Positions 5,047 to 56,056 of a stretch of 64,000 nt of DNA are shown one piece after another. The notes beneath the pieces are model-generated. The model worked only from the letters and a program-made list of their open reading frames with translations. It searched no databases and was not told where the DNA came from. The translations under genes were made by a program, and so were the position numbers. Within the stretch, counting starts at the first letter, position 1. Every line of letters starts with the position of its first letter. Source of the stretch: Saccostrea echinata (Eukaryota); NCBI RefSeq assembly GCF_033153115.1, contig NW_026889779.1:15686001-15750000 (forward strand), read 5' to 3'.

Positions 5047-5461
5047 GTTACTATAAAGCTGATGAGTGAATAAATACAATTCAAAATTTCTACATTAACA
5101 TATTCAAATTGTCATGCAGTGAACTATCTTAATGGGATTGACAAGAATTATTTTTTTAAGAAATAAGTACAATGTAAGTATTTATCTACTAGTATTTCTC
5201 TTAAGTTTGAGATACAGAAACATTTTTAATGATAAGAAAGACATACATATATAATTATATATAAATCAGCTTGTGCCCCATATATTGATTTAATTTATAT
5301 CATTATATATTTCAATATAATTTATATATAATATATTTTTATATAATTTATATTATAATTGACATAGTTTCTAACTAGAGATACAAAAGATATACATTTA
5401 TCAGCATGACAATACACTGAATTTTTAATCTAATCATACAAGAGTCAATAGTACATGTATA

Positions 5462-8064
5462 TCATTTTACATCAATTTTGGTTACATGAGGGCCTCCAGA
5501 CGAATTATCCCCCGGCTTCGTTTTTGTTTGAGTTTTTACTGTGCCATTCTTTATACTGTCCTTGTTGTTGTCTGAGTTATCAACATTTGCATAAATTGGA
5601 TCTTCTGCATGCACTGTTTTATCGTTGTCTACAACAGACTTGACCTCGCTATTTTCCTTTTCTTTTTTCCCATCTCTTTTCTTGAATTGAGCAACTCCTT
5701 TGTAAAGTAGGGGTCCATCTTCATGCAACAATAGGCTAGGCCAAACAACATATTCAATGAGGTCACCAGATCTTGTGTATGCCCTGTACATCTCCATGGA
5801 ATCGGTGCTAGTAACCATATACACAGGCGGATCCTGAAGTGCCATCATCCAGCAGAGGCGTGTACAAAGTTTAAAAAAGTCATTGGCATGTTTACAGTTC
5901 TCCAGTTGGTTCACAGCAATTCCTAATTCTTCTTCAGCCGTTGTCTGATCTTTAATGACTTTATATGGAAGGATCTAAAGATAATATGTAGAAATATAGG
6001 ATTGTTAATTTGTTCTTTTTATCCCTGAACAACAAATCTGTTCAATATCAAAATGTACTAAAATTAATTTGTCCATTTAAAGGACAGAGGATACAAACTT
6101 TTATAAAATATCATAAAAATAACAACCAAAATCATGTTTATATAAATAACAAATGAAAAAGTTTGTATAGATTAATATGGGTGGTTGGAGAAAAGTAGAA
6201 TTTTGAACATCATAAAAAGTTTACAATTTCTTAATATTTTATGAATTAAATATTTGCATTGNNNNNNNNNNNNNNNNNNNNNNNNNNNNNNNNNNNNNNN
6301 NNNNNNNNNNNNNNNNNNNNNNNNNNNNNNNNNNNNNNNNNNNNNNNNNNNNNNNNNNNNNNNNNNNNNNNNNNNNNNNNNNNNNNNNNNNNNNCATAAT
6401 ATGGTCTTACATTACCTTTAAAGCTTGACTTAGAGTGATTTCGCAATGTCTCCTGATAAAATCTCGGCATTTTCTGTCCAATTCGATTGCCATTTCCTTA
6501 ACAAAAAATGAATAGATGATCTCCAATAATTTTAATAATGCAGGCTTGTTGGAGAATTAACCTGCTTTTTATCATATTACTTGAATTTCCTGGACTATCT
6601 CTTGTTTATTTATACACTTACTCCAACATTTTCGTTGTGAAAGGAGACCGCATCCTTGACGTGTTTTAACTGCTCCGCTGCCTTTTTCTTGCATTCTTCA
6701 TACGTTACCTTTGGTTAAAGGGAGAACGAAGAACATTTAATAAAACACACTACATAAGATAGTATTTACATAATCTCAATGGATTTAACCATGAAAAAAA
6801 TCGTATTAATTTGTAATTCGAATTCTCAGACAATTAATTGCAGAGTTGAAAGACCAATTTCCTACAGTATATGGAAGAAGATAGCGACACCTTAGCAAAA
6901 TTATATAGAAACTTGATGACAACGATGTCCATTTCTTCTTCCGACGTTTCCTTTGGGAATTTTATCGTTTGCTTCAATTCCTCTGCCGCATCCGTCCATT
7001 CGTTGTCGTACAATTCAGAGAACTTCTCTGCCAACTTACTAGGTCGATTCTGGTCGCTAAGATCTGCTATGGCAGGATTGTTTGATTTTAAACGGGCACC
7101 TGCTACTTCCGATATCCTGAAAAAGGCGGATGTTAGATGGAGGTAAGAAGACACGTTTTGGTTTTTGAAATGGACATTAAAATTTTCATATCTGAAATTG
7201 TAGACTTCTTGTGGTCCGCACAATTTAAAAAGTTTGTTTACAAACACGACATTTGCTCTCAAATATACACAGATTCCTTTCACTATCTCAATTTATAATT
7301 TCTAAGGTCAGACGACACGTTTCTCAATACTATAATGTTTCCCAAAAATTGTTATTGATGGAAGTATTGCTATATATACTTTAACAAGTTTCCTGGCCAA
7401 AATATTTTTTAGGTACATTATATCAAGCATTTGTGCAAGATTCCAGAGGATGGTATTTCCTACATATTATCCTATTATCAATCCTTCGGCGTATATATAC
7501 ATTTTTAGACATTTTGAAAACAATGGTAGTAAATCGCAGGATTACTAACTAGGTATATTATTATATATTATTATTATTGTTATTATTATTTTTATTAAGA
7601 GATACAAAGCAATGTGTCGTCAGACCTTAACATTCAGAAACTGCTGCATAAATACTTTACTTATTCAAAATATCTTGGCGTTGTTTTTCAAAACTTGAGA
7701 GCTGCTGTTTCATTGTTATCAGTCCGTGGGTTGACTGTGAACTTCCATCCTACAGAGTTAAGTATAATATCAGGTATATTCACTATAGTTTTAACACGAC
7801 TGGGTTTTTTTTTCTCCGATAAATAAAATTCACTTTTCCTTATTGTGAATTATGACAATTGTATACCTTTTGGTGATGTTGGATAAATTCCTGCAAAGCT
7901 TTGACATCGTCCACGGATAATGATTTCTTGCCGTCTTTGTACTCACTCAAGACGTTGTTGAGTTGTTGGTAAGGGTCTCTGGGCGGACGGGGTCCATCAG
8001 AAGTGCCTTTAGGTTGACTCGGAGAACTCCCATTTTGACTGACACCACTCCCCATTTTATCCAT
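5462..8064 (-). CDS. Mitochondria-eating protein (Mieap/SPATA18) C-terminal-domain protein, ~394-397 aa, bivalve-type paralog
   Basis: Phase-consistent GT-AG exons: (8064 or 8055)-7867, 7749-7661, 7116-6891, 6708-6622, 6496-6416, 5974-5462. Family motifs NPAIADLSDQNRPSKLAEKFSELYDNEW, LCWMMALQDPP and YRAYTRSGDLIEYVVWPSLLLHEDGPLLYKGVAQ. An N-gap lies in the last intron. Confidence 0.85.
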
Positions 8065-8823
8065 CCGATAGTCCCTGTATATATATACATATATAAACTT
8101 CCAGCAGAGACGGATACAAACACAATAGAAATATATACTAGTACCTGGTGATGTATCACCTACCATTATATGCATGGACATCTGTAGTTCATGACATCTA
8201 ACATCGATTCTTAAAAATCTGCTTTCGGTTTGGCAGTAAGAATGCTATATTTACATTTTTTAAATATTACCAAGGTGGAACGCCTGACCTGGAATTTATA
8301 GTGCCATGTTGTTCGTTCAATAAAAAGGAAACCGTGGCATTACTATCGAGGTGCTGTTAGTTGAGTGTTTCCTTGCATCACCATTCTCATTGCAATATGT
8401 CACAAGGTTTGTTTAACAACATAGTCATTTAAGCTCATATCTGCTTATTTGATGGCGTATCACAATAAATCATTTAATCGTGTCTAGTACTTTCGTTTTA
8501 AAAAATTAACATCCCTGTTTAACACTATTAAGTTGAGTAGTAACCGAGGAAGTATTGTTTAATTGGACCAAGTTTCCGAATGAACAATTTAACCAAAGCG
8601 TCTAATATTAATTAATACTTCATGATTAGTTTTCTGACCATTTAAGGTAAACATGAAAATTAAAGAAGATGGGCAAAAAAAGGCGAGCGAAGTGCCTATA
8701 GTGCGACAAACATGAAGATGAAAAATTAAATCTCATAATAACAAAATTTTCTTTGATATTTCATCTAAACTCAAGGCATACTTTATGTAAAATATCCTAA
8801 ATTTGCAAAAATCTCGCAAAGAT

Positions 8824-9695: not shown

Positions 9696-12029
9696 AGGCT
9701 ACCTCGTGGTTTTACCACCTTCGTAAGTCACTAAACAATCTAATAGAAATTTTCATCTTCAAAGAAGTTAATATGTACAAATTAATAAGCTGACAAACGA
9801 GTAAGAGAGAATTTAAATTAATACATTTCGACCACATTAATTAATTGTTTATTGTTTTCTGTCAACAGGTCGAGTGTCAAAGACCGATTCCCTCTTGGTC
9901 ATGGCCATTGACTTCGGAACAACCTATTCTGGATACGCCTTTCAATTTAGACATGACTACGAATCAGACAGGATTGGAAGTATTTTTGCAAACACGTCTT
10001 GGGTTGCAGAGGGTGGAAATGGCCTAATGTCTTGGAAAACACCAACCACCTTGCTTCTGAATCCAGACGACAGTTTCAACTCTTTTGGTTACGAGGCTGA
10101 GGAGGTGTACCAGGAGCTGATAGAAAACGAAGAACATCATGACTTCCATTACTTCCGCCGATTCAAAATGATGCTTCACAACAAAATGGTACAAAAATGG
10201 TGCAGAGCATGAAACGTCATTTTATCATATTTCATATCCAAAGTTTAATTGTGCAAATATCAAAGCATAAAAAATGAAAACTCGCATTTTTATATTACCA
10301 AGTTGATAACTGCATACGTTTCATCGTTTTTGATGCATGTATAATGAGTTCAAGTTTAATGTCATCTCTTTATCTATATTTAAAGATAATGAACCGTGAT
10401 GTCATTATAGAAGATTCAGGTGGTCGTGGATTTCCAGCTCGTACAGTGTTCAGACATTCCATTGACTACCTGAAAAAGCATTTCTTCAAAACTATTGAAG
10501 AACGTGCACTAAACTTAGAACACAAAGACATCCAGTGGGTCCTCACAGTTCCTGCAATATGGAATGAACCCGCCAAACAATTCATGAGAGAAGCTGCAGT
10601 GGAGGCAAGTGACTGACAATTAAATTTTATTTGCCATTTCAAATTAATTTTTACAAGAAAGAAAGAGATAACGTTTTGTGATTTTGTGATTCAGGCGGGA
10701 ATACCCTCAGATAATCTGCAGTTGGCCCTTGAACCTGAAGCAGCCTCTTTGTTCTGTAAATATGTTCCAGCGGAGAAGCAGTCTGATGAAGACGGACAGA
10801 ATATGAAAATAGTTCCATTTAGCATCGGGACTCGGTACATGATTCTTGATCTTGGTGGTATGTAAAAAAACAATCTGTTAATAAGAGAAAACATACACGC
10901 CAATGAATTTGATAAGGTATTAAATTCGAATTCATATGTACATTATACATTTTCAGGTGGAACCGGTGACGTCACAGTTCATGAAGTTGTAGATGAGAAT
11001 TCCCTACGGGAAATCAACGTAGCCAGTGGGGGTGCATGGGGAGGGACGAATGTGGATAAGGCATACTACAACATGCTTAAATCTATCTTTGGTGAGGATG
11101 TTCTTATGAAGTTTAAAACAGAAAGACGAACGGATATGTTAGAGTTTCAGAGGGATTTTGAAATGAAAAAGAGACATATTCGAGATAAATTGGGACAAAA
11201 CACTCGACCCGTTATCATCTCTGTCCCAGCACTGCTTTCTGAATATGTAAGAGAACTAAAAGGCATGAGCTTGCAAGATATCGTGGCAAACTCGGAGTTT
11301 GCTGACAAAATAAAAATAAAACCAGGGAACAAACTTGCAATCGCTAGAGAATTAATGGAAACGCTTTTTGATGATCCTAGGGAACAAATCGTAACACATG
11401 TTCGAAACATTCTGGAAAATCAAGAAAATGAAAACAGAATATCTGCCATTCTGATGGTTGGTGGATTCTCCACATCCAATATAATAGTGGATGCAGTGAA
11501 ACAGGCGTTTCCCGAGCTTCGCGTTGTAGTTCCACCGGAGCCTGGTTTAGCCGTTGTGAAGGGAGCTGTGTTATGTGGACATGCCCCGTTGACTATCTCT
11601 TCGCGCGTTTGCAAATATACGTATGGAGTTGCTGTGTACGACAATTTCGATGAAAATAAACACCCATTGGAAAAAAGAGTGGAGCATGAAAACGAGGTTC
11701 TATGTAAGGATGTCTTCAGTATGTTCATTCAGGCTGGTCAAAGTGTTGATGTCAATAAAAGTGTTGACGAATCATACGACGTACCAAAGCCACACGCTCC
11801 AGTGTCTCTACAAATATATGCGACCCCCGATAAAAATCCCCTGTTTACGACAGACGAACACTGCGAGATGCTTGGTAGAATCATTATCAAACCTCCAGCG
11901 AGTGGATGGCAAAAAGGCGCGAAAATAAAGATATCTATGAAGTTTGGAGGAACAGAGTTCGAGGTTCACGCCACAGACCCCCAGAATCCAGAGACAGTGT
12001 ACTCAACTAAATGTGATTTTCTGCTGTAA
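9696..12029 (+). CDS. HSPA12: Heat shock 70 kDa protein 12A/12B-like atypical Hsp70 (~600 aa; start exon not located)
   Basis: Exons 9869-10188, 10386-10604, 10695-10857, 10957-12029 (probable microexon 9696-9722). Motifs IDFGTTYSG, WVLTVPAIW, KQFMREAA, LEPEAAS, DLGGGTGD, LMVGGFS; no C-terminal lid or EEVD. Confidence 0.93.
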
Positions 12030-19440: not shown

Positions 19441-20251
19441 CTATTTCTTCTTCATGATTTACTTCTTTTTTATGTTTCACCATGCACTTTTTGCACAAAG
19501 CTATAAAAAGAAATATCATAGTTCATAAGAGCTTTAAATTTCTAATTTACAATGAAGTCATAAAATCAATTCCAAAAACTACATTACATTGATAATTACA
19601 TTGTTTAAAATGTATAGGGATACAACTTTAATTATAACATCCTGTCATTATTGATAGGCATCAAACGTGCAACAACAAAAAATAATAAAAAAAATAAATT
19701 AAAAAAAATCATAAAGCATCAGGTTACCGTTATTTAACATATAACATCATAGTTCATATGAAGGATCAAAAATTGTGTCTGCTTTTCCAAAACTTTTCAT
19801 CATCTTTATATTAATTCAAATGGTTCTTAATAATGAAAATTATCATTGAAATTTTTAATCAAATACCTGATCCAATTGGCAATGTTTGCCCTGTCTGTAA
19901 CCACACTTCTTTACAAAGTGTGGGAGAAGCCCCGCGGTCAGCTTTTGCATTGCCTTCATGACCGGGATATGCGCAGGTCCTCTGTGGTCGCCTCCACTGC
20001 ACACCTAACCTTTTTCTGTGATTGTCACATATTTTCAAAAGGAATAAGTGTTTGTCAATAACAAATAGACCAGCCCTGTATAAAAGAACCAAGTACTCCG
20101 GGCAGCTTACATTTTCTGATGTTGTTTTTATTCCTGAACTCTTTAAACTGTATAAGTGATTTGATACGTCTTCATCACATTCATATAATTTATAGGTAGT
20201 ATCTAACAAATTACACTCACAGGAAGGAGCAAATTTCTTGAAATCACACAT
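19441..20251 (-). pseudogene. Spliced Cys/His-rich N-terminal fragment, probably from a DNA-transposon gene (Sola-like, tentative)
   Basis: Exon 20251-19867 splices in phase to 19500-19441 giving ...ICDNHRKRLGVQWRRPQRTCAYPGH...PIGSALCKKC. The pattern resembles N-termini of large transposon-associated proteins in marine invertebrates; no catalytic region found. Confidence 0.45.
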
Positions 20252-45384: not shown

Positions 45385-48300
45385 TTAAAGAGGAATTACT
45401 GAAGTTGTTTTAGAACTTTGTAAATTTGTAATTGACTTCTTTCCATCACCTTTGTCTTCTTTTTTACTTTTTAATGGGCCAATAAATGAAAGTACCACTG
45501 GAATCAAAAGAACTGAATGGACAAGACCGAAAAATATCACAAGAAACATCATTTGTCCAAAAGTTTTAAAGATGTAGCTGTTTGCAAATCCTAAAATAGA
45601 AACGCCTAAGAGGGTAGAAAATGCCGCGTTAAATATAGGTCCTCCGGATCTGTCTAAGGCGAGGTGAACTTTTGTGGCCCTGTCGTCTGCATCTACAGCA
45701 AGATAGGCGTGGCAAATATGGGCGCTAAAATCTACAGAGAACCCAACGGTCATGACTAGGTGTATCATGGTGATGGAACTCAGTGAAATGTCCCAGAAGT
45801 ACATAAAGCCGAATACCCCTAGTAGGATAGTAAACAGGGTAGCCCCGACAATAACGATCAGGGTTGGATGAGGCATGAAGACGATCGTGACGAAGATTAT
45901 TACAGCTATGGCAATTCCAACAGTTTGCAATGTACTTGGAAGAATTTCAACAAACTGTTCGAAGAAAATGAACGGATCAGCGTACACGATCATGGGAATC
46001 GCAGAATTTGAAGTCACTTCCCGCATGCGCAGCATCATCTTCCCTTGGTCATAAGAAGACTTTAAGCTATTGGTTTTCAAGTAGAATCTAGAAGAGGTAA
46101 TGCTCGTTCCAGCAGAATTTATCACCACATCACTAGCATACAGTGGCACATTTGTCAGGAACGTCTGGAGAGCAGCAATGAAGGCAGATTCAGAGGTGTC
46201 CACATACAGTGCAGATTGTTTAAAGGCAGATAGCCAGTTCAATTCAAATGCGTGATCTATGTCCTTGTCTTGTTTTGCTGTAGTAAGAACCGATGTTATT
46301 ACTCCTTGAGTCCAAGAAGATGAGTACGTCTGGGTTGTCTTGACATTAAACGACATAACGATCTCCGTTGTAAAGTAATTCTCAAGCCAGGTACTGTATT
46401 TGTAAAAGAAGGAGTCTTCCGTGACAAGGTTTGGAAGAGATAACCCTTGTTTAAGATGGACAGCACCAAAAACAGAGAATCCAAAGTAAATTACAAAAAT
46501 AAATATGATTATTATCTTCAGGGCTAGGTAGCTCATAATTTTTTGGATGAATCTTTTTGGATACTTCTCCAAAGGGCTGTCGACATCGTCTCGTTCTTTT
46601 GGTGGGTATCCAGCACATGCGTAAAGTGAGCATCCTGTTTTCCCATCTTTCCTCAGCGATTCCCTATCTTTTGTCCTTATACAGCATGCCACACAGTGTC
46701 GATTGCCTTTAATCCTCTTTTCATTGATTGCTATGCACGCAGAGAAAACAGTGATTTGATTGATGTAGCAAAAAAGTACTGCAACACCTGCAACAAAGCA
46801 AAACATATCACAAACAATAGTACATTTCTATGCATGTACTAGTTTCGAGCATATTTGTAGATTTTAATGACATTTAAATCGAAATTTAGAGATCAAAAAC
46901 TATTATACTTGTAATAAGTAACTGTGGCAACCATAACAATAGCCTACCAGTATAAATGCAGAAATTTCGGACGCTTAAGAAAACCGAACTTGCTCCGATC
47001 AGGAACGCCAGGAAGTCCGTGATGGAGGTGATTGTGATGGCGATTCCACTGGTCTTCATCATAAAGTAAATTCTGTCCGATACGCTGGAATTTTCTATAG
47101 TCTCAGCATCAGCAATACCAGACATTAAAATAAAGACATCGTCGATACCAATGCCTGTAGATTCAAACAATCATAAACGTAATTTGATAAATATTGAATG
47201 GAATGGTATGGAAGTTCAAAATAAACATGTGTAGTTTAAAATTCTAAACTGTCCAATGTAAGTATGGGATTAGTATTCTACCCTTGACATGATATTATAG
47301 GAACGCCAAGACAAAATCATGTACCCGTTAAGGATTACCTTGACAAGAATGGAGAAGCATATATGGAGGGGGGGGGGGGCACCCCAAAGGATTCTTTATA
47401 ATCCCACCTTTTAAAAAGATGTAATCAAACTTTTCAGGAGATTGAGAATATCTACTTTTCCTAAGTTGCATTTGCTTACCTATGATAAGGAAAGGCATAA
47501 CACTGACAATACTTATATACTTCACTCCAATAAGACTCAGTAAACCAAAAGAGGACACGATAGAGAGACCAGCCGCCAAAACACCTGCTTGACCTAAAAG
47601 ACTTCTGTCTGCTATGAAATTACAATTCTGTCTCGATGTGGCAATGGATGCATACGTCATCATTAGCGTCAACGTCAAAGCGAAGAAAAGAATGTCTCCC
47701 CCAATATTTTTCTCCAGTTCATCATCTAACGCACGAGAATAAGATGGAGCCAATTCAGAGACATTAACAACAGCACCCGAAATGGATTCAACAAAAGCTT
47801 TTTCCCATTCCTTAGAATTCGCTCCACTGAGGTAATAGGTTAGTTTCAGGCCCATGGCATATGTGAGTATTCCGCTAGAAGAAGATGCTCTTGCAAGAAG
47901 AAAACTTATAGAAGACTCCTTGAATATTGGGTATGTGATATTGTTTGCCAGCATCATCTGTTTGAAATCATTTGACAAGAAGATGTCCCCAGACACTACA
48001 CAATTGCCATTCTGTTTGGCACATATGTTAGCAAATGTTTTATTATTGACGGAAATTGAGTTGCGTACATAGTTGTCAACAGACGTGACATCATCTAAAA
48101 ATGCTGATGTCAGCATGTTTCCCCTGTCCTTTGTTAGAATGAGCACTTCTGTGAAGTCGGACGACTCTTTGTGCGAGTAGAAATCAGAGTTACTTGGATA
48201 CACATTCTTTAAAAAATCTCGATCTTTTGAAGCTTGGCTGTTTTCTGGTGTGTAAAATTTCTCAGATCCACTTTCTGTTTCAAGTCTAAGCATACCAAGG

Positions 48301-48425
48301 CCAAGGAGACAGTTAACAGAGATAGCAATAGCTAGAACTTTGACAGGATGCCGTTCCAGAAAGCGTCCATACAAACCAAAGACGCGACCTATCCTCTCTT
48401 CTTGTCTATGATAGCAGTCACCCAT
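45385..48425 (-). CDS. Patched domain-containing protein 3-like / Patched-related (PTR) RND-family sterol-sensing-domain membrane protein, 851 aa
   Basis: Exons 48425-47480, 47154-46948, 46787-45385 in phase. MPFLIIGIGIDDVFI, ITITSITDFLAF, VRNFCIY, VGFSVDFSAH, SYIFKTF; two 1+5 TM halves. Confidence 0.92.
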
Positions 48426-53620: not shown

Positions 53621-56056
53621 CTACTTTTTAAAGGAGTGGCGTACCTGATTCCAGAAAGACTCCTTCTCTCCTTCTGTTCCGCATGCATTCCAGTCTGCAT
53701 ACGTCACTGTTGAGAGAATTAATCGCAGTGAATTGGTGATGTTCTTTGGTTCAATTTTTTCGATCAAAATGACAACGAGAAGGTTATTTTGCTCCAAAAT
53801 AAGTCGATTTTGGGCAATGATTAGCTCAAAGTCGCACCATTTACTTCTAGCAAAACTGTTCGATAAAATAACAATGACTTTTCGGCTTTTTTGAATGCTG
53901 TTCACGATGTTATCTGCAATGAGCTTTCCTACTTGAAAGTCTCGGTAATGAATACAGAGATGATAGCCTTCCCTATCCTCTAATGTTGGAACCAGAATTT
54001 TATGCACAAATTCTTGATCTTCCTCTGCATAAATAACGAAGGCATCGTAATCAAAACCTTCCTGACCTGCAATTGCTTCATACCCATTCCTTCGAAATCT
54101 GTACATATATATCAAATACCGAATGTGCCATCGGGCCTTGTATATGATCAGGGTCACCATTAATACACAAATAAAACAGGAAGTTATGGCAATTACTAAA
54201 ACTTTAGAATATTCCGGAATAGGACACATTTCTGATTCTGTTAAATCCACAATAGCTTCATTCTTAAGATGCGACGGAGAAGCACATACTAATTTTTTAC
54301 AGGCTCTCCTCATTGGGCAAAGTTTCTGTCTATTCTCTATCATCCAGTCATGGAACCATTTGACCTCTTTGCAATTACAAGAGAACGGGTTGTGTTGGAG
54401 TTCTATGAATTCAATGTATTGTAGAAGATGTCCCGGGAATAATGTTTTGTTCACAACAACGATGTGGTTTTTAGAAAGGTCAATATACCTAAGAGTTGTT
54501 GAATTTCCAAACACATCGTGGCCATTCCATTCCACTATCATATTGGTTTGTAAGTAAAGCTGACGCAAGTTTGGCAAAACTCCGAATATATAACGTGGAA
54601 GATAATGCAGATTGCAGTCCACCAGGAACAACGATTCCAGATTTGTAAGAGGTCCCAGCATCTGTTTCATGACCGTTTCATTGTGTTTGAAAAGGTTTCC
54701 TGACAAATCCAATAACTGAAGACTAGGGCTGTTTTTAAATAAGGAGCCTGGGTAAAAGTTTGGAGGGTCAATAGAAAAATGGAATGCATTATCTCTAAAA
54801 TATAGTTGCTGAAGACTAGAACTATTAAATGCGTATTTTCTTATAAAATGGAGTTGTTCGGCCATTGTACTCAGGTGCAGTATTTTGAGACTTGGGAGCA
54901 TTGAGAATGTATTGGAGTAAAGTAACCGTATTGCATGGTTATCTAAATTCAAATACTCTAAATTATCTAGACATTTAAATTTATATTTCAGCGTTGAAAG
55001 TTTATTACTGTGCATGTCAAGCACCCTCAAGTTACTCAAATTAAAATCACAGAAAACTGGCATCCGAACAAACTCATTTTTTGAAAGATTGAGGGATACA
55101 AGATTCTTAAGAGAAGAAAAATTAGCTTTTCCAGAATTCAGCAAATTATCGTGTAGAGACAAATTCTGCAGCTCGAGAACTGGAGAGAAAAGGCCATCTT
55201 TAAGACTTGTAACATAACTGCTCTCTAATGTGATGTTAATGACCTTTGATCCTTCTAATCCCCGGAAGAATGTCGATGGTAGGTTAGAGAGATTAATTCT
55301 GTTTAATATCAGGGTATGTAGACTGCGACTTAGTGAATGAAAACTCCCTGCAAGACTTATCTTGTCTAATTTCCTTTCGTCTTCGATGTGGAGATGAGTT
55401 AGGTCTCTTAAATCGACAAAAGAATCATTAGCCAATGTCCTGATTCTGTTTTTGAGGAGGACAAGATTTTGTAGTTGTGAAGATTTCGTTAAAGGATATG
55501 TTAAGTTTATGAAAGTAGTCCTATTAATATGGTTCAATTTGTTATTGGACATGCAGAGATGTGTTATTTTAATTGGAAATCTTGGAATATAGGTCAGATT
55601 TAAATTGCTGCATATCGCTGACTTCGAGTAACACTGACATGGGTTATTTTCCGAACACTTCTCCCATGGAACGTCTTGAGGAAATGAGCAGCATTTGTGA
55701 TGTTTCACATAAAGTAAGACAAACAGGAAAGAAGCCTTTAACGTATACACCTAAAATTAAGAAAAAAATTCTTATAATAAACAGTTTTATCATCAATTTT
55801 ATATAGGTAAATGTAATAAACAACCTTAAAAGATTTTCTTTTATTTTTGAAATTGTTGCGTACTAGTAGTCGCGTAGTGTACTCATTTCCGCATAAACAC
55901 CCTAGCCTAATTAATCTGACTTTGAGTACAGTATTCAACCAAATGAAAGTCATCCTCCTTCTTAAAAATGGATTTATAGTAATTAATATTTTCAATACAG
56001 AAAAGGAAACGAAAATCTTAATCAACATTTGCAGGAAACACAAATCTTACCGCCAT
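53621..56056 (-). CDS. Toll-like receptor (single cysteine cluster type), ~711 aa
   Basis: Exon 1 56056-56051 (aaaaATGGCG|gtaaga) and exon 2 55750-53621 (ttttag|GTG). Signal peptide, LRRNT, many LRRs, LRRCT NPFSCNC, TM helix, TIR with YDAFVIY / LCIHYRDF / SKWCDFEL / FW. Confidence 0.95.

Follow-up and report, generated by a model that had tools for sequence, protein, structure and literature searches.

A 64,000-nt stretch of the genome of the oyster Saccostrea echinata (contig NW_026889779.1), referred to here as the window, is AT-rich, with a GC content of about 0.30-0.40. Three-frame translation and lists of open reading frames (ORFs) identified six coding pieces on its minus strand, running from 8064 to 5462, which form a gene whose product almost certainly carries the domain of the 'mitochondria-eating protein' Mieap (PF16026). 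This gene faces an HSPA12A-like gene of the Hsp70 family. The predicted fold of the Mieap domain probably resembles that of the exchange factor GrpE, and the two neighbours may encode partners.

Structure, transcription and family of the Mieap-domain gene

The lengths of the six exons sum to 397 aa (66+30+75+29+27+170), the length of an NCBI entry named 'uncharacterized protein LOC133196438 [Saccostrea echinata]' (P0152), which equals the exon translations of the window. Residues 1-397 of this entry are fully covered by the six exons in a tblastn comparison, with no residue missing, and alignment with the exon 6 piece gave 100% identity. Because the public protein equals the exon translations, P0152 was used as the whole protein of the Mieap-domain gene. 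Contigs of the sequencing run X5 were placed on positions 5400-8200, their joints being read with cut shifts (+1). Five joints have CT..AC ends, equivalent to GT..AG on the minus strand: 5974|6416, 6496|6622, 6708|6891, 7116|7661 and 7749|7867. X5 is recorded only as 'RNA?', and we argue that it is RNA because of these five spliced joints; this one run of one study makes up the expression evidence. The features of the gene, in the direction of transcription, are as follows.

7867..8064, minus strand: coding exon 1 (66 aa), with the start codon at 8064..8062, encoding the disordered N-terminus and the first helix; its ORF begins MDKMGSG, the tblastn match to P0152 starts at 8064 and the X5 joint is 7749|7867.
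7661..7749, minus strand: coding exon 2 (about 30 aa), encoding part of the stalk helix; read from the frame translation and the X5 joints 7116|7661 and 7749|7867.
6891..7116, minus strand: coding exon 3 (75 aa), where the stalk helix ends and the PF16026 domain begins, also encoding the conserved loop NNPAIADLSDQNRP; set by contig joints.
6622..6708, minus strand: coding exon 4 (29 aa), encoding a helical stretch of the Mieap domain that matches P0152 residues 171-200 at 100% identity; joints 6496|6622 and 6708|6891.
6416..6496, minus strand: coding exon 5 (27 aa, ending ..SQALK), encoding a further helical stretch of the Mieap domain and immediately followed by the donor GTAATG; joint 5974|6416.
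5975..6415, minus strand: intron 5, containing an assembly gap (6262-6394) and a piece of interspersed repeat (6163-6241); spliced out in an X5 contig of 653 nt, its ends reading CT..AC.
5462..5974, minus strand: exon 6 (170 aa and the stop), encoding the last helices, a six-stranded beta part and a disordered tail of about 70 aa; it starts ILPYKV after ..ctttag.

The run of N at 6262-6394 lies wholly within intron 5, and the frame and continuity of the gene are therefore independent of the gap. A hidden exon within it is ruled out by the joint 5974|6416 and by the continuity of both P0152 and its Saccostrea cucullata orthologue P0001, which read ..ALK|ILPY.. with zero residues across the site. 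The oyster gene at this locus is intact, its transcript is spliced, and its product is a Mieap-domain paralogue of 397 aa.

Some further observations were made on the transcript data. Two versions of the X5 contigs exist over exons 3, 2 and 1 (6892-7007, 7660-7748 and 7894-8077), one identical to the window and the other with 6-10 differences, representing either alleles or different individuals. A single contig of run X1 has a joint at 8073|8163 with GT..AG-type ends, which suggests an intron in the 5' untranslated region of the Mieap-domain gene, within the intergenic region that it shares with its neighbour. Runs X1-X3 matched the gene almost only through pieces of intron repeat: the segments 6163-6241 (intron 5) and 7427-7466 (intron 2) are found on many unrelated contigs of X1-X3 and X5 at 90-95% likeness, and probably belong to an interspersed repeat.

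The match of P0152 to PF16026 scores 77.9 bits (cut-off 27; E 1.3e-21), with residues 120-322 covering profile positions 1-193 of 195. Taken singly, two of the six exon pieces match the profile: exon 6 (E 1.8e-10, 41.6 bits, profile positions 112-193) and exon 3 (E 7e-4, profile positions 1-34). The motifs of the family (NNPxIADLSDxNRP..ELYDNEWTD, LCWxMxIQDPPV and GxxVDYVVWPxLxLHxxGPxLxKGVAQ), whose columns are invariant or nearly invariant in alignments of 132 and 150 sequences, are all present in these two exons. The peptide MEMYRAYTRSGDLIEYVVWPSLLLHEDGPLLYKGVAQ, encoded on the minus strand within the ORF 5462..5914, forms part of the last exon (5974..5465). Residues 1-100 of exon 6, searched against 1.84 billion representative proteins, matched 1145 at E<=1e-3, the best being P0001, a 414-aa protein that is 85% identical over exon 6.

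On these profile matches, the assignment to the Mieap family is very nearly certain. The gene belongs to a set of at least about 70 paralogues within its genome. The profile matched 75 exons among 99 candidates, and 70 last exons were left after five N-terminal or duplicate pieces were dropped; the best paralogue of the window gene is 51-54% identical to it over about 70 aa. We know of no bivalve member of the family that has been functionally tested. The last exons form tandem clusters of up to nine copies (e.g. C56:17.65-17.72 Mb), on contigs C25, C56, C30 and C57. A comparison of molluscan genomes places the Mieap family OG24 among the top bivalve expansions, with 53.1 genes per bivalve vs 0.6 in other molluscs (PMC8382680).

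Predicted fold and its probable likeness to GrpE

An AlphaFold2 model of P0001, built from a 132-sequence alignment (A1), has a mean predicted local distance difference test score (pLDDT) of 79, exceeding 90 over most of residues 90-340. The N-terminus is of low confidence (pLDDT below 50 at residues 1-3 and 10-29); helices then occupy residues 43-119, followed by a loop at 120-132 corresponding to the nearly invariant NNPxIADLSDxNRP, by helices at 133-158, 167-205, 215-228, 230-248 and 266-284, by six short strands between 290 and 336, and by a tail with pLDDT below 50 at residues 354-405 and 411-414. A model of the first 100 aa encoded by the window's exon 6 (150-sequence alignment A3, mean pLDDT 87) has the same helix and six strands. 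The P0001 model bears out the disordered N-terminus and long helical region that a preliminary description of the locus had read from the bare sequence. The beta-rich part it proposed is likewise real, being six-stranded in both models, but does not form the end of the protein, since a disordered tail of about 70 residues, rich in K, N, D and S, follows. A coiled coil had also been proposed; the long helices and the coiled-coil-only matches agree with it, although it is deduced from these rather than from a dedicated predictor.

By sequence, the structured domain has no solved relative among the best 60 of the 220 matches (E<=10) obtained when a profile of 132 family members was compared with PDB sequences; all 60 fall within profile positions up to 173 and constitute coiled-coil noise. 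It is predicted, with high confidence, that the domain and GrpE share one order of parts: first a disordered N-terminus, next a long helix forming a stalk, after it a domain of helices, and then a C-terminal beta 'wing' of six strands.

Structural comparisons point the same way. Searching the PDB with the exon 6 model, Foldseek returned 54 matches at E<=10, of which ranks 1-10 are all GrpE, with another GrpE at rank 17; the best is 3a6m_A (E 0.09, probability 0.69, TMq, the template modelling score on the query, 0.42). When Foldseek's own matches to the whole P0001 model were looked at a second time, GrpE took ranks 1-5 of 486 chains, the next row being TAP at 5.4. A further structural comparison with the whole-protein model placed GrpE at ranks 2-4, with 141 of the 151 residues of 1dkg_B aligned, and GrpE alone among the 48,161 chains compared matched the C-terminal helix and beta part. 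Across two programs and two models, GrpE is consistently the sole solved family resembling the last helix and beta part, and nearly the whole GrpE chain can be aligned co-linearly with the Mieap domain. The GrpE-like fold suggested in the preliminary description is therefore probably real as far as such models can indicate, with the wing and the preceding helix as the best-matching part, even though the scores that support it are sub-threshold.

The HSPA12-like neighbour

The gene adjacent to the Mieap-domain gene had been described beforehand as an Hsp70, and its homologues endorse this.

9874..12029 (approximate limits), plus strand: HSPA12A-like gene of the Hsp70 family, head-to-head with the Mieap-domain gene, with the phosphate-binding motif DFGTTYSG in its ORFs.

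The coding starts of the two genes face each other about 1.8 kb apart. The names of its homologues mark the neighbour as HSPA12A-like, and its ESM Atlas scores of 0.97-0.98 are to molluscan clusters that are partly PF00012. Pfam searches with its single exons gave no HSP70 match, only a weak one to BcrAD_BadFG, and searches of PDB sequences with two of its exons gave no meaningful match. Its last exon has at least 123 matches in its own genome. According to the literature, HspA12 proteins lack the helical lid, are massively expanded in bivalves, and are of presently unknown function, with no known co-chaperone (PMC13580251). The HSP70 family OG10 is among the top bivalve expansions, with 68.1 genes vs 4.4 in other molluscs, and the available text treats the Mieap and HSP70 expansions side by side, drawing no physical link between them (PMC8382680). 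In the gills of cadmium-exposed zebra mussels, HSPA12A was 1.83-fold and a Mieap protein 1.41-fold more abundant (PMC11036304, Table 1), an anecdote in which no link between the two is drawn in the part of that paper available.

Mieap and HSPA12-like genes are found together elsewhere in the genome. An HSPA12-like last exon is found no more than 10 kb from six of the 70 Mieap last exons, vs 0.17 expected, and no more than 20 kb from ten, vs 0.29 expected; counted by cluster, 4 of 26 Mieap clusters are within 10 kb of such an exon, vs 0.13 expected. These expectations assume uniform placement and ignore regional gene density. C1q served as a control for the clustering together of expanded families: none of 150 C1q exons had an HSPA12-like exon within 20 kb, and one had such an exon within 50 kb. 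By Fisher's test, Mieap differs from C1q at 9e-4 (10 kb) and at 7e-6 (20 kb). Three of the pairs are head-to-head (that of the window, C57:6.81 Mb and C25:23.70 Mb) and one is tail-to-tail (C56:20.07 Mb), and the Mieap genes paired with HSPA12 are not each other's closest paralogues. Co-location of the two families in the S. echinata genome is non-random.

Three other genes or ORFs were noted in the window, all on the minus strand. A single-exon gene at 53624-55750 encodes a 709-aa Toll-like receptor (LRR_8, E 9.5e-25; TIR, E 2.3e-19). Two long ORFs at 45388-48425 represent a transporter-like gene of the Patched/sterol-sensing-domain (SSD) type (Patched SSD 1.8e-10, Sterol-sensing 1.2e-6). At 19862-20251 there is a cysteine-rich ORF of 130 aa, with no Pfam match at E<=0.001.

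Candidate functions and known systems

Judged by the predicted fold and the genomic context, it is possible, if still tentative, that the protein is a physical partner of HSPA12-type ATPases. It would act, as a coiled coil and probably as a dimer, in the role of partner or adaptor to these Hsp70-family proteins, one of which is encoded head-to-head with it; like GrpE on DnaK, it would use its beta wing together with its helical domain to dock onto the nucleotide-binding domain. Docking might either open the ATPase and hasten the release of ADP, in the manner of a true exchange factor, or serve solely to recruit it. If the Mieap domain were a GrpE-like partner of HSPA12, this would explain the identity of the domain, the partner of HSPA12 and the multiplication of both families in bivalves.

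To our knowledge, GrpE-type exchange factors occur only in bacteria and organelles. A bolder proposal, which appears improbable, derives the Mieap domain from a GrpE exchange factor, as a highly diverged descendant in the cytosol, or regards it as a convergent copy of one; it would serve the orphan HSPA12 branch, with candidate exchange activity. Were it true, the parallel bivalve expansions would represent co-evolving pairs of chaperone and co-chaperone, some of them kept head-to-head, and vertebrate Mieap/SPATA18 might itself act through an Hsp70-type ATPase.

Several results weigh against a GrpE-like partner of HSPA12, beginning with the sequence comparisons. The GrpE pattern quoted in the preliminary description fits the consensus drawn from 40 animal GrpE proteins (A2); the echo of it that had been seen by eye in the oyster protein is not significant. 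PF01025 was not found at E<=10 in the six exon pieces, P0152 or P0001, whilst a control GrpE homologue from oyster (P0248) scored 144.8 bits. Comparison of A1 with A2 by hhalign produced one 30-column match in the stalk helix, at a probability of 1.4%. The GrpE profile was widened with alphaproteobacterial genes (600 stretches matched, 592 confirmed, 80 kept and 77 used) to 117 sequences, against which the stalk helix reached 2.7% and eight columns at G..FD.. reached 0.7%. Local alignment of the C-terminal parts alone scored 19.3 over 11 columns at the same G..FD.. site (query 36-46 vs template 34-44), a score reached by none of 150 column shuffles (mean 10.5, standard deviation 2.2, maximum 17.3) and so counting for the GrpE-like fold, but with an hhalign probability of 8.3%; global mode gave a meaningless alignment of four columns. 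The sequences share no more than a short motif echo at an equivalent place, and sequence homology to GrpE is not demonstrated.

The remaining counter-evidence is structural and contextual. None of the 54 Foldseek matches to the exon 6 model reached E<=0.001, nor did any of the 488 to the whole 414-aa model, in whose list the GrpE entries stood no higher than ranks 14, 17 and 33, surrounded by membrane proteins. All the structural match scores are below the confidence lines stated for the tools, and the aligners see the same order of helices and strands as the eye had seen. An ESM Atlas structure search with residues 96-328 of P0152, which covers clusters of at least 50 members, listed plant GIL1/IRKI_C and unnamed fungal and ciliate clusters as nearest (TM scores 0.60-0.65), and GrpE was not among the matches listed. 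About 110 helical residues of the oyster protein, between stalk and wing, are extra to GrpE. The canonical mitochondrial GrpE of the genome is represented by one exon on another contig (135.5 bits, 99% identical to Saccostrea GrpE proteins). Of the 70 Mieap exons, 64 are more than 10 kb from any HSPA12-like exon, and fusion of the two families was seen in none of 245 Mieap-family proteins, judged by matches to the neighbour's last exon at E<=1e-3. In the available parts of the texts, 'Hsp70' does not occur in a paper on human Mieap (PMC10845071), nor do chaperone terms in another Mieap paper (PMC3334856).

Other searches for a link between the families were also negative. The last exon of the neighbour matched none of 120 GrpE proteins at E<=1e-3. 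A review of GrpE-like proteins contains no occurrence of Mieap, SPATA18 or HSPA12 in the part available (PMC12987570), and a literature search, judged partly by titles and the beginnings of abstracts, found no text linking Mieap/SPATA18 with GrpE in substance. One further candidate, that the window gene is itself the GrpE of this genome, is ruled out by the separate canonical gene.

The leading alternative, which we consider slightly less likely than an HSPA12 partnership, is a Mieap-type scaffold with no Hsp70 link, in which the disordered and coiled-coil half would drive condensate formation and the C-terminal domain would bind lipids (cardiolipin, phosphatidic acid) or mitochondrial partners. 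The GrpE-like build would then be a distant structural echo devoid of shared function, and the co-location with HSPA12 that of co-regulated stress genes only. Membership of PF16026 is clear, and the human protein consists of disordered regions with two coiled coils and a hydrophobic, structured C-terminal region, which is proposed to bind phospholipid substrate and concentrate the protein in mitochondrial condensates, condensates and cardiolipin binding through this region being the subject of the human work (PMC10845071). The absence of the GrpE sequence signature, the conserved loop NNPxIADLSDxNRP for which GrpE has no counterpart, and the silence on Hsp70 and chaperones of the available text of the two Mieap papers (PMC10845071, PMC3334856) also favour such a scaffold. 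However, it leaves unexplained why, of 48,161 chains, a domain that binds lipids would match GrpE alone, and why Mieap but not C1q exons lie beside HSPA12-like genes; moreover, because the window gene is one of at least 70 paralogues, the best of them 51-54% identical, it need not have the very function of the single vertebrate gene.

It is unlikely, finally, that the resemblance is due to chance or is generic, a helix with a small beta meander being common and GrpE merely the PDB's example of a long helix with a small beta domain, in which case the protein would act with a different partner, such as one in immune or stress signalling, and would be an ordinary member of a known expanded family.

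The proposed HSPA12 partner can be set beside several known systems. The nearest structure listed by the Atlas outside the Mieap family, for residues 113-328 of P0152, is the C-terminal domain of the plant GIL1/IRK-interacting proteins (PF24994, found with DUF641), at TM scores of 0.65 on the query and 0.52 on the row over 191 residues. A coiled coil and a C-terminal domain are found in both, but the feature score of 0.78 is below the tool's line of 0.9 and no Pfam hit was obtained at E<=10, which makes this a lead only; we know of no Hsp70 link for GIL1/IRKI. Clusters from Mucoromycota, Ascomycota and ciliates are near residues 96-328 as well, at TM scores of 0.60-0.63, and a Mucoromycota cluster is also a top look-alike of the HSPA12-like exon (score 0.96). 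There may be a wider eukaryotic superfamily, with co-occurrence of the Mieap-domain and HSPA12-like families.

The BAG domain, HspBP1/Sil1 and Hsp110 are eukaryotic exchange factors of Hsp70, and the role proposed here, that of partner to an Hsp70-type ATPase domain, is of the same kind; their folds differ from the GrpE-like one, and none was among the top structural matches listed. Human Mieap/SPATA18 shares with the oyster protein a PF16026 match over the gathering threshold, and a disordered and coiled-coil N-terminal half followed by a structured C-terminal half (PMC10845071). The oyster protein is shorter, at 397 aa, the disordered region IDR4 of the human one being at residues 499-538 (PMC10845071); its gene is not single-copy but part of a bivalve expansion, among at least 70 paralogues (PMC8382680), and is head-to-head with an HSPA12-like gene.

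GrpE/GrpEL1 (PF01025; PDB 1DKG, 3A6M, 4ANI and 9BLS) is an asymmetric dimer composed of a disordered N-terminus, a stalk, a short helical domain and a beta wing (PMC12987570), the order of parts that is predicted for the oyster protein. The last helix and six-stranded beta part of the latter superpose co-linearly on the C-terminal 80-100 residues of GrpE in the models. It differs from GrpE in the disordered tail that follows the wing, in the very conserved loop, and in the additional helical residues; the last two point to a function of its own.

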